From Piromyces finnis finn (lineage: Eukaryota; Fungi; Neocallimastigomycota): a stretch of 64,000 nucleotides of DNA. A program made the translations under genes and the position numbers. A model generated the notes under the pieces. It saw nothing but the letters and a program-made list of their open reading frames with translations. It was not told the origin of the DNA and made no database searches. Location of the stretch: positions 310,001 through 374,000 of the forward strand of contig MCFH01000009.1 in NCBI GenBank assembly GCA_002104945.1, written 5' to 3'. This document shows, in pieces, positions 27,479 to 31,800 of the stretch. Positions within the stretch are counted from its first letter, which is position 1. Every line of letters starts with the position of its first letter.

Positions 27479-30400
27479 TTATATTTTAATTATAGCTTCT
27501 ACAACTTGATTTTCTATTAATATGTCATTAATTAAATCTTTATCATACAAAATTTGATCGTTGTCAACTTTGAAATAACGAATATAAACTTTTTCATTAT
27601 TAATTTCATAATATCTTTTTTCTGCTTCTCTCATCAACCATTCTATAGTTTCACTGGCAGGGCATGGTATAAGTAATTTATCTTTTCCAAAATTTACACA
27701 AACTCTAATTTTTTTAGTAGTCTATTATTAATTTATTTAAATTGTTAAATATTAGTTTAGGTTTATTGTAATTAACTAAATTTAATTTATATTTTATCAT
27801 ATAAATTATAACTTACCAGTGAGGGTATATAACCATGAAATTCTGTAGGTGAATTAAATTTTTTGGTATCAATTGTATTATCTATGAGATCATTAGTAAT
27901 CCAGTTATTAAACATTTTTATATATATAATTTTTAAGTTTATTAATAATATATTTTATATTACCTAAATTAACAAAATCTAATGGTTTTGGAAGATCAGC
28001 AATACTATCGCTATTATATTATTTTTATAATTTTTTAATTATATTAATATTAAACAATTAGAAAATAATAGGAAACTTAAAATATAATAGCTTTTATTTT
28101 CATACTTGCTATCAATACTTTCTGTGTCACTAATAAGATTTTCAGATTCTTTTGGAGTTTTTTGATAGTATCTTGTATGAAAAAAAAAAAAATAATAATT
28201 ATTTAATGAGTTATACATTATACTAAACAATATATTATATATATAATTAATATCTACTTTTCTTGACGAATTTTCCTTTTTTTTAGCTTCTCCAACTCCT
28301 TATTAAATTCTTTAAAATTTGGATTATGATCACGATAATCACTTTCTTCTTCAGATGATGAATATATATAACTTCGCTTTTTTTTTCGTTTATGATATTT
28401 ATTTTGATAGAAATTGTCTATATTTTCTTCATCTTCCTTCGTTTCCTTTTCTATTTTTATTTTTTCTTTTTTCCTTTTTGAGGTGTTATATAAATCACTT
28501 AACGCATTATCAGTTATTCTATCATTAATTATTATATCAGTTGATGGCTCTTGGTCTTTTATTAAACTAATTTCATCTTCTCTTTCTGAGCTATAAAATG
28601 ATGGATCATTAAAAGATGACTATATTACATATATTACATATATTAAATTTAGATTTTGAAAGTCAATTATTTAGCAAAAAAAATTAATTTTTATTTATTG
28701 ATTTATTACTTCAGTATTCGGAAGAGCTATCATATTTAATTGTTCTTGTGCTTCTTGAGCTTTAGCTGGTAAATTATAAAGTTTATGTATTCTAATTAAA
28801 TTAATTAAAGCGTTATACATTCCCTCATTGTCTTGAGTTGACTTTCTAATAGTTATCTCATTTTCTAATGCTCTTTCGATTTCATCATGACTCTATACAA
28901 GTTAAAAAATTAACAATTATATAATTAATATTTAATAACATATTAACAAAAATCAATTTTTATATTTATTACTTTTTTTAAATTTTCAAGTGATATTGCT
29001 AATTGTTTATAAAATTCTGCTTTCATTGCTAATGGCCCATTAAATTTTTTTTCTAAATATCGAAGAAACTTATATCCTTTATCATATATTTTATTCTCAT
29101 TATAAAACGTTCCTATTATTATTATTATTATTATTATTATTATTATTATTATTATTATTATTATTATTATTATTATTATTATTATTATTATTATTATTAT
29201 TATTATTATTATTATTATTATTATTATTATTATTATTATTATTATTATTATTATTATTATTATTATTATTATTATTATTATTATTATTATTATTATTATT
29301 ATTATTATTATTATTATTATTATTATTATTATTATTATTATTATTATTATTATTATTATTATTATTATTATTATTATTATTATTATTATTATTATATTTA
29401 AATATTATTTTATATTTTACCACATAATAATAATAATTCACTTAATTCACTTTTCAATTCTGGAGTATTTTCACATAAATATAACATCCTTTTATAATTT
29501 TTTGCTACTGAACTTCTATATCTTAAAAAACTTTAAGTATATAAACATATGTTTAATTTTATTAATATGCATTTTTAAAATTATTATATATATAATATTA
29601 TATTCTTACATCAATGATTTATTTAGCTTTTTTAATATCTTAAATTCATTTATAAAATCTTTATTTTGAATTACAACTTTTAATTGATTTTCAAGATCAT
29701 TTTTTAATTTATTTTCTTCAATAGCTTGGTTTGTTTCTTCTATTAATATCTATTGAAAATATAATTATTAAATATAATTATAATTACTTCAATTATCAAT
29801 AAAAAAAATTCTTTTTTACTAACTTTTGATTTCTCTATATGATCACTAAGGTTTAAATCCTTTACATGCACTATATATAATATTAAAGAATATGATTAGA
29901 TTTCAAAAATAAATCGTATATAATATATTGGAATATTCATTTACTATAATATTCATTAAAATTCGATAGCGCTTCATTATACATATGTAAGGATTTATAG
30001 CAAAGACCTTTTTTAAAAATTTTATATAAAATATATATTATAAATTATTTTATTATTTTTTATAAATTTATATTTCTTTATAATATTATATTATTATGTT
30101 TACCTATATCACAATAACATTGAGCTTTTTCTAAATGTAATTTCATTTCTTGACACATTTTTAAATTATCTTTATAGCACTGTAAAATTTATTATTATTA
30201 TTATTATTATTATTATTATTATTATTATTATTATTATTATTATTATTATTATTATTATTATTATTATTATTATTATTATTATTATTATTATTATTATTGT
30301 TATTATTATTATTATTATTATTATTATTATTATTATTATTATTATGTATTTATAACCTTTAAAGCATTCTTGTAATCTTTGTTATTAAAATAATAAAATC

Positions 30401-31800
30401 CAAAATTTTCACAAATTAATCTTAGATTTTCTTTATCCCCTTTAAATATATATTATGCAAATAGAAAATAATTAAAAAACATTGTACTAAATATTATTCT
30501 ATATCATTAAAGAAATTATTAATTACCAATTTCAACTGAGATTTTATGTGATGCTTCAAAAGCCTTTCCAGCTTTTTTATGGTCTTCAAGGTGTATATTC
30601 CATATTATACCTAAATTTAATAAAGTTTCAGCATATAATTTTTTAGTAGCTTTTCCTGTATCTTTTAATTTTTCCAATGCTGCTTTGCAATTCAAGAAAT
30701 TCTCTATCGAATGTTGATAATAACTTTTATCACTTTCAAATTCCCTACAAATATTATAAATATTATGATACTGTTAATTTTAAAGTTGCATTTGATAATA
30801 AAAAGAGAAGTATTATACTATTCATTATTAAATTCATTATCATTGTACCCTAATTCTAAATAAACTAAACCAATTGCAAAATATTCCCTTGGTATATCAA
30901 GCTAAATTTTGAAAAGTAGAATATCAAAAATAAAAAGATATTATTATTTAAATATTGTAATTAAAAAATATATAAAACACTAAATTTGCCTTATCCTTTC
31001 TAATTTTATATTTAATTTGAATATCTAATGATAATTTATGATAATCTAATGCTGTATATAAATCTTTGACTTTATCCTCACTTTGTGAACTTTAAAAATA
31101 TATATATATTAAAAATTAAGAAATAATAATTATTAAATATTAAAAAAATATATATTAAATTAACATTTGTTTTTTTTTTTTAATTACATAATATTAAATA
31201 AGAAATTTTATAAAATGTATATATAAATATTAAATATTTATTATATATACCTATGCAATGCTGAAGCGCATTTTGAATATGAACTTTATATTTTTAAATA
31301 AATATAAAAAAAAAAATTATAAAAAATTAAAATTTATTAAATAACATATTATTAAATAAAAAATATATATATTTTAAACAAATTTGTTAATAGTCAAAAT
31401 TTAATGTAAAAGTATGTATAAATATAAATATTGAAAACATAAAATATATATTATATATATTAATTATAAATTTGCAAGAATGATTTTTATATAATTTACT
31501 AAATTATATAAAAAATAATAAAAGAGAAATTTACTATGACAATTGGGTATAATTATTTAATATTTTTGAAGCTTTAATAGCTTTCTCATAAAAATATGCA
31601 GATCGTTGATAATCATCTGTATTGTAAAATAAATCAGCTACTTGTAATGAATAATGTAGGACAGACATCCAATCTTCATTTTTTTCTGAAAGCTTAATTG
31701 ATAATATATTTTTTCGAGTTTCTTTTGGTATATTTTGTGAATTAACTTCTAAATGTGGTTCAAATTTTATTTGATAAGTTACATAATTTTTAGGACTCAT
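27479..31800 (-). CDS. TONSL: Tonsoku-like (TONSL) orthologue: N-terminal TPR array, linker and C-terminal ubiquitin-like domain; no ankyrin or LRR domain
   Basis: Spliced TPRs (ALDYHKLSLDI, DIPREYFAIGLVYLEL, ETLLNLGIIW) are colinear with recalled human TONSL (ALQHQHQYLELA, ELQRAWATIGRTHLDI, RLYLNLGLTF). The last exon KIRVCVNFGKDKLLIPCP..TIEWLMREAEKRYY..DKDLINDILIENQVVEAII matches the TONSL UBL (IRVRVQVQDHLFLIPVP..SVAWLAEQAAQRYY..PQDLIPDVLQSNDEVLAEV). Confidence 0.82.
29114..29395. repeat. (ATT)n microsatellite, ~94 units, filling most of a TONSL intron
   Basis: Perfect repeat running up to the 3' splice AG on the minus strand. Confidence 0.95.
30189..30345. repeat. (ATT)n microsatellite in a second TONSL intron
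   Basis: Near-perfect repeat with one GTT variant. Confidence 0.93.

Follow-up and report, generated by a model that had tools for sequence, protein, structure and literature searches.

We analysed a TONSL-like gene in a window of the genome of the anaerobic gut fungus Piromyces finnis, the window being the whole 64-kb stretch of DNA under study (64,000 nucleotides of contig MCFH01000009.1); all coordinates are positions in it. The gene lies on the minus strand, starting with ATG at 31800-31798 and stopping with TAA at 27481-27479, in a region that is extremely AT-rich (9-26% G+C around the gene). Its exons total 2304 nt, that is, 767 codons and the stop, and its introns (74-308 nt each) are GT..AG throughout. 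The predicted protein consists of an N-terminal domain of tetratricopeptide repeats (TPRs), a linker and a C-terminal ubiquitin-like domain (UBL), encoded as follows.

27479..31800, minus strand: TONSL-like gene, full coding span, 18 exons (exon walk and public protein BCR36DRAFT_410248)
31535..31800, minus strand: exon 1, with the conserved N-terminus M-x-PK..[YF] and TPR1-2 (exon walk)
30981..31283, minus strand: exons 2 (31283-31251) and 3 (31089-30981), with junctions that agree with the Neocallimastix mRNA
30527..30901, minus strand: exons 4 (30901-30849) and 5 (30744-30527), joined at LELG/EFES (match to the public protein)
29824..30439, minus strand: exons 6 (30439-30357), 7 (30179-30104), 8 (30007-29945) and 9 (29870-29824), core LGN-type TPRs
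28710..29749, minus strand: exons 10 (29749-29610), 11 (29530-29421), 12 (29112-28973) and 13 (28892-28710), the long TPR7 helix B and TPR8-11
28734..31725, minus strand: genomic span of the 11-TPR domain, residues 26-499
27817..28619, minus strand: linker exons 14 (28619-28258), 15 (28171-28106), 16 (28010-27964) and 17 (27881-27817)
27482..27721, minus strand: exon 18, the Par3/TONSL-type UBL, with the stop codon immediately after

The same gene is represented in public by BCR36DRAFT_410248, a P. finnis 'hypothetical protein, partial' of 762 aa, on which the exon peptides fall in order, separated by at most 1 residue where codons are split. Refined boundaries place the junction of exons 4 and 5 at LELG/EFES and the acceptor of exon 11 at 29530, 15 nt further upstream than in the plain exon walk. 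The public model closes at ..ENQVVE, while the frame continues for 5 codons (AIIKI) to the TAA at 27481-27479 (27479-27496). Two introns are nearly pure (AAT)n: intron 11 (29420-29113, ~280 nt), which a mechanical finder of open reading frames (ORFs) read as a 113-aa poly-Asn ORF, and intron 6 (30356-30180, ~150 nt).

The exon structure was confirmed with a transcript of an orthologue. A metatranscriptome contig of 2457 nt corresponds to the spliced mRNA from Neocallimastix californiae; its protein is 100% identical to the N. californiae model LY90DRAFT_199646, and the mRNA is collinear with the exons of the window gene from the middle of exon 1 to exon 18, confirming the exon junctions. At its 3′ end the UBL is followed by the stop codon and an AT-rich 3′ untranslated region of 255 nt, and no ankyrin or leucine-rich repeat (LRR) sequence was found in this mRNA. 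The mRNA shifts frame in an A10 run (contig 1789-1817), and the model LY90DRAFT_199646, of 505 aa, therefore has neither linker nor UBL. Since the frame beyond the run stays conserved, an error of assembly or in the homopolymer is the probable cause of the slip, rather than a real truncation. Of the P. finnis data, four runs contained 24-43% of the sampled words, near the proportion made up by exons, and probably consist of transcript contigs.

The TPR and ubiquitin-like domains

Pfam assigned TPR_12 (48.8 bits) and other TPR families to BCR36DRAFT_410248. An AlphaFold2 model of residues 1-512, based on an alignment of three fungal sequences (mean predicted local distance difference test, pLDDT, 87.6), contained 22 helices in residues 26-499, which correspond to 11 TPR hairpins. 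Helix 14 of this model, helix B of TPR7, was unusually long (residues 309-344). The TPR domains of TONSL and of its plant counterpart TONSOKU (TSK/BRU1/MGO3) are built of 11 tandem TPRs in three lobes, and in Citrus TSK helix B of TPR7 is extended (PMC13674474, 2026). Like TONSOKU, the fungal protein carries 11 LGN-type TPRs at its N-terminus, with a lengthened TPR7 helix B, in a domain of the size expected of TONSL/TONSOKU (~460-530 residues).

Among solved structures in the Protein Data Bank (PDB), Foldseek ranked first 7t7t_A (TSK/BRU1 with histone H3.1; E 1.8e-12, 486 columns), followed at E ~3e-9 and ~350 columns by chains of Pins/LGN. As the sole solved chain, 7T7T spans all 11 repeats of the fungal domain. 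LGN/Pins outscored it on the first seven repeats, being aligned to model residues 19-330 only. Sequence identity between 7T7T and the modelled fungal domain was ~15%, with a poor overall superposition (root mean square deviation 10 Å). As judged from the model, the TPR evidence for kinship with TONSL is thus one of architecture, not of sequence. The isoelectric point of the TPR domain (8.5) was uninformative on an acidic channel.

Other searches of this region gave little. The individual TPR exons, too short for such searches, had hardly any matches in Pfam or the PDB. Word-index protein searches returned mostly bacterial TPR proteins, within a length window that leaves out full-length TONSL and TSK (~1300-1400 aa), and the word search with the UBL region returned the query alone. 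The ESM Atlas, also when searched by fold, yielded nothing beyond generic TPR or LRR clusters.

Exon 18, scoring 30.4 bits, exceeded the cut-off of 21 for the Pfam family PF12053 (Par3_HAL_N_term), as did the whole of BCR36DRAFT_410248 with 25.7 bits. In the PDB, the sequence of exon 18 matched the human TONSL UBL chains 9wvh and 9wvi and no others. A profile of four fungal UBLs likewise had the TONSL UBL as its top match (9wvh, 1.6e-7, 34 bits), making it the closest solved relative of the fungal domain. The human TONSL UBL dimerises, and the residues highlighted in it include R934, G973, E1002 and D941 (PMC13418528). Both gut fungi have R at the R934 position and N at the G973 position; of two fungal relatives described below, Hyaloraphidium has K and D at these positions, and Jimgerdemannia V and G. 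In the TONSL UBL, G973 occupies a positive-phi turn, and we infer that N or D may also fit such a tight turn. The N-terminal domain of Par3 is of the same Pfam family and of the same ubiquitin-like/PB1-like, self-associating fold class. Self-association of the fungal UBL is plausible.

Linker, 3′ end and selection

The linker (residues ~500-690) contains acidic/Ser patches (SSSEEESD) and basic clusters (KRKKKR, KKRKIR) resembling nuclear localisation signals (NLSs). The acidic linker of P. finnis has a net charge of -6, so that an acidic stretch follows the TPR domain as in TONSL/TONSOKU; the Neocallimastix linker contains long E/D runs, and that of Hyaloraphidium acidic/Ser-rich patches. No Pfam match to Ank or LRR was found in BCR36DRAFT_410248 or the linker exons at E<=10. 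The predicted fold of linker and UBL, from a shallow alignment (pLDDT 49.7), showed one basic helix and no repeat architecture, which argues against a hidden ankyrin domain. An ankyrin or LRR exon could not be hidden in introns as short and as AT/AAT-repetitive as these. The ankyrin repeat domain (ARD) that reads H4K20me0 in the animal TONSL subfamily is therefore lacking in the fungal protein.

The stop codon directly follows the UBL, and the end of a convergent ORF lies 463 bp away, leaving no room for LRR exons. In the whole 64-kb window no LRR was detected by tblastn with a fungal UBL-LRR protein as the query. The two features downstream of the gene are the following.

27016..27478, no strand: AT-rich 3′ intergenic stretch, 463 bp, without coding capacity for an LRR
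26449..27015, plus strand: convergent neighbour, last ORF of a Cys-rich protein, outside the TONSL-like gene (ORF list)

The convergent Cys-rich protein (26449-27015, plus strand) has repeated C-x-C patterns and a C-terminal hydrophobic (membrane) span followed by CCC.

An initial annotation, made from the letters of the sequence, had related the gene to TONSL/TONSOKU through both its TPRs and its UBL, had found neither ankyrin domain nor LRR, had described the linker as acidic/basic without ankyrin, and had noted that the frame ends after the UBL with a convergent Cys-rich gene nearby. These descriptions hold: the 11-TPR fold has 7T7T as its top match and the UBL has TONSL as its best PDB match; Pfam and the relative's mRNA show neither of the missing domains, and the window search no LRR; the linker shows acidic/Ser patches and basic clusters without a repeat fold; and the distance to the neighbour is the 463 bp given above.

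We compared the window gene with the Neocallimastix mRNA codon by codon and exon by exon (dS ~1; exon 14 trimmed), estimating the ratio of non-synonymous to synonymous substitution rates (dN/dS). It was 0.10 for the TPR exons (433 codons, 82% amino acid identity) and also 0.10 for the UBL (78 codons, 82% identity), and 0.30 for the linker (167 codons, 63% identity). The gene is under purifying selection, which is strongest on the two folded domains.

Relatives in other fungi

We scored the UBL exon against 1.8 billion representative proteins. Two proteins only were found, KAI9003361.1 of Hyaloraphidium curvatum and RUP42935.1 of Jimgerdemannia flammicorona. BCR36DRAFT_410248 itself was not returned, its cluster presumably being represented by the UBL-less LY90DRAFT_199646, and absences from this search are therefore weak evidence.

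The protein of the monoblepharid chytrid Hyaloraphidium (721 aa) has the same layout of TPRs, linker and UBL, with an acidic/Ser linker and the UBL at the very C-terminus. Its TPR domain (14-285) and that of P. finnis (19-298) align collinearly (E 3e-7) and have an N-terminal M-PK motif in common. The next gene on its strand, 108 bp downstream, is that for the splicing factor Syf1.

The protein of Jimgerdemannia, a member of the Mucoromycota, is organised differently: in its 447 aa a UBL of the same kind is directly joined to an RNI-type LRR. On its 6.9-kb contig a TPR gene model (1003-3181) precedes the UBL-LRR model (3399-5761) on the same strand, 218 bp apart, and an ORF further upstream (24-290) opens with MPKATF, as the chytrid proteins do. 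The N-terminal motif of exon 1 is thus found in this ORF as well as in N. californiae LY90DRAFT_199646 and Hyaloraphidium KAI9003361.1. The upstream ORFs of Jimgerdemannia gave weak Pfam TPR matches and no Pfam Ank match; a small profile of the chytrid proteins aligned the UBL alone on this contig and not the upstream TPR ORFs. The arrangement of the models makes it likely, though unproven, that they are parts of one TPR-UBL-LRR (TONSOKU-like) gene split by annotation. Comparison of these fungi suggests that early fungi had a plant-like TPR-UBL-LRR protein, from which the LRR would have been lost toward the gut fungi and monoblepharids. Yeasts are not known to have kept any part of TONSL.

A reduced TONSL relative and its alternatives

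We consider, with a probability of about 0.6, that this conserved gene of anaerobic gut fungi encodes a TONSL/TONSOKU homologue reduced to an 11-TPR solenoid, a disordered linker and a C-terminal UBL, and we propose that it acts as a reader or chaperone of histones H3-H4. The NLS-like clusters of the linker would make the protein nuclear. The channel of the TPR domain would accommodate the N-terminal tail of H3 in unmodified form, in the way seen for the TONSOKU TPR domain in 7T7T; this binding is predicted from the similarity of the folds. The acidic linker may add histone contacts, and the UBL may self-associate as the human TONSL UBL does, so that the protein would read or chaperone, as a dimer, H3-H4 freshly deposited on replicated DNA.

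As in TONSOKU, the ankyrin domain is lacking and the UBL is downstream of the TPRs (in TSK according to the alignment in PMC13418528); TSK, however, carries a C-terminal LRR, whereas the fungal protein ends after the UBL. With animal TONSL (TPR-acidic-ARD-UBL-LRR) it shares the order of TPRs, acidic stretch and UBL, and the equivalent of R934 in the UBL is kept. In contrast, it is about half the size of the animal protein, has neither the H4K20me0-reading ankyrin domain nor the MMS22L-binding LRR, and keeps neither E1002 nor D941, while G973 is replaced by N. The LRR is the part of mammalian TONSL that binds MMS22L (PMC9409234), and that of TSK binds the tails of H2A.X/H2A.W (PMC12710692). Without an LRR, the canonical binding surface for MMS22L (in animals) or H2A.X/H2A.W (in plants) would be unusable, and any link to repair factors would therefore have to go through another surface or another protein. 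Recruitment of MMS22L-type repair, which the initial annotation had suggested, is unsupported and less likely, because the MMS22L-binding LRR is missing.

Several observations weigh against the proposed reduced TONSL homologue. By sequence, the best solved relatives of the TPR domain were Pins/LGN (2e-9 with a profile), and the TSK chain was not reached by TPR sequence or profile searches of the PDB, even at E<=10. This preference agrees with the description of TSK, from the outset, as an 'LGN repeat + LRR' protein (PMC2721414). The N-terminal domain of Par3 matched the fungal UBL profile nearly as well as TONSL did (6.7e-6, 29 bits), and E1002 and D941, which are partners in the human dimer interface, are not kept. 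The fungal protein also has no C-terminal LRR, a domain common to animal TONSL and plant TSK. Finally, the spliced mRNA belongs to the Neocallimastix orthologue and not to the P. finnis gene itself.

An alternative that we consider unlikely is a TPR scaffold of the LGN/Pins or TTC28 kind, combined with a Par3-type self-associating domain, which would serve as a cytoplasmic adaptor of polarity or spindle type and have no chromatin role like that of TONSL; the likeness to TONSL would then reflect shared domain superfamilies only. The sequence matches of the TPR region to Pins/LGN would fit such a scaffold, as would the Par3 name of the UBL family, the Par3 chains matched at 6.7e-6 and the nearest ESM Atlas clusters, which were TTC24/TTC28-type TPR proteins (a lead only). 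However, LGN/GPSM2 and Pins have 8 TPRs followed by GoLoco motifs, without a UBL or an acidic/NLS linker, and cover fungal residues 19-330, whereas the fungal protein has 11 TPRs and a C-terminal UBL, and no GoLoco motif was found in BCR36DRAFT_410248 by Pfam; its 11-TPR length, TPR7 helix B and full coverage fit 7T7T instead. The Par3 domain is N-terminal and followed by PDZ domains, and scores below the TONSL UBL (29 versus 34 bits), which is the top match; the fungal UBL is C-terminal, after an acidic/NLS-like linker, as in TONSL. In addition, the closest non-chytrid fungal UBL has an RNI-type LRR immediately after it, exactly the arrangement of TONSL/TSK.

Less probable still is that the missing parts are encoded elsewhere, either in a separate UBL-LRR (or ARD-LRR) gene whose product pairs with this one through UBL-UBL contacts to form a two-chain TONSL, or in exons added in rare transcripts. 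Dimerisation of the human TONSL UBL (PMC13418528) provides a means for such pairing, and a stand-alone UBL-LRR gene model does exist in Jimgerdemannia. That model, however, is preceded on its strand by a TPR model 218 bp away, and the two are probably one gene split by annotation. No gut-fungal or Hyaloraphidium UBL-LRR was found among the 1.8 billion representative proteins, although a library that hid BCR36DRAFT_410248 behind a UBL-less representative could have missed a gut-fungal one. The 64-kb window contains no related LRR, the Neocallimastix mRNA finishes after the UBL, and the stop codon with the convergent gene, like Syf1 in Hyaloraphidium, leaves no space for further exons.

The possibility raised by the initial annotation that the gene is a degenerating, lineage-specific remnant without function can be dismissed as highly improbable: only two canonical domains out of four are left and the public models are partial (BCR36DRAFT_410248) or truncated (LY90DRAFT_199646), but dN/dS of ~0.10 on both TPR and UBL at dS ~1 between two genera rules out degeneration, and the frame is intact through 18 exons, the Neocallimastix orthologue is spliced into mRNA, and the architecture is identical in Hyaloraphidium. 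What stands of that annotation's overall interpretation is a reduced TONSL relative, whose layout recurs in Neocallimastix and Hyaloraphidium; its degenerating form does not stand.

A further step from the reduced homologue, which we put forward tentatively and regard as rather doubtful, is that TPR and UBL form a self-sufficient TONSL core, with which zoosporic fungi (gut fungi and monoblepharids) would run a pathway independent of MMS22L and of an LRR, a TPR protein dimerised through its UBL reading new H3 on replicated chromatin. In a variant of this idea, the UBL may heterodimerise with a separate LRR protein to give a two-chain TONSL. If the core is indeed self-sufficient, the ARD and the LRR would be detachable accessories, and fungi would not simply have lost TONSL.

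Our literature search found no paper that links TONSL or TONSOKU with fungi, and in the reviews consulted it appears as a protein of plants and animals (PMC9409234); the fungal proteins are already public, as 'hypothetical proteins'. Until binding and localisation have been measured, the finding is of modest practical value. As a reduced homologue, the gene would provide a natural minimal form of TONSL in a kingdom where TONSL has not been discussed, and raises the question of what couples it to repair without the LRR that binds MMS22L and H2A.X. A stepwise fungal history, with TPR-UBL-LRR apparently kept in a species of Mucoromycota, TPR-UBL in fungi of chytrid grade and none known in yeasts, could help to date the loss of the pathway. 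The gut-fungal protein would then amount to a natural deletion experiment, asking whether reading of the H3 tail and self-association of the UBL are enough for function.

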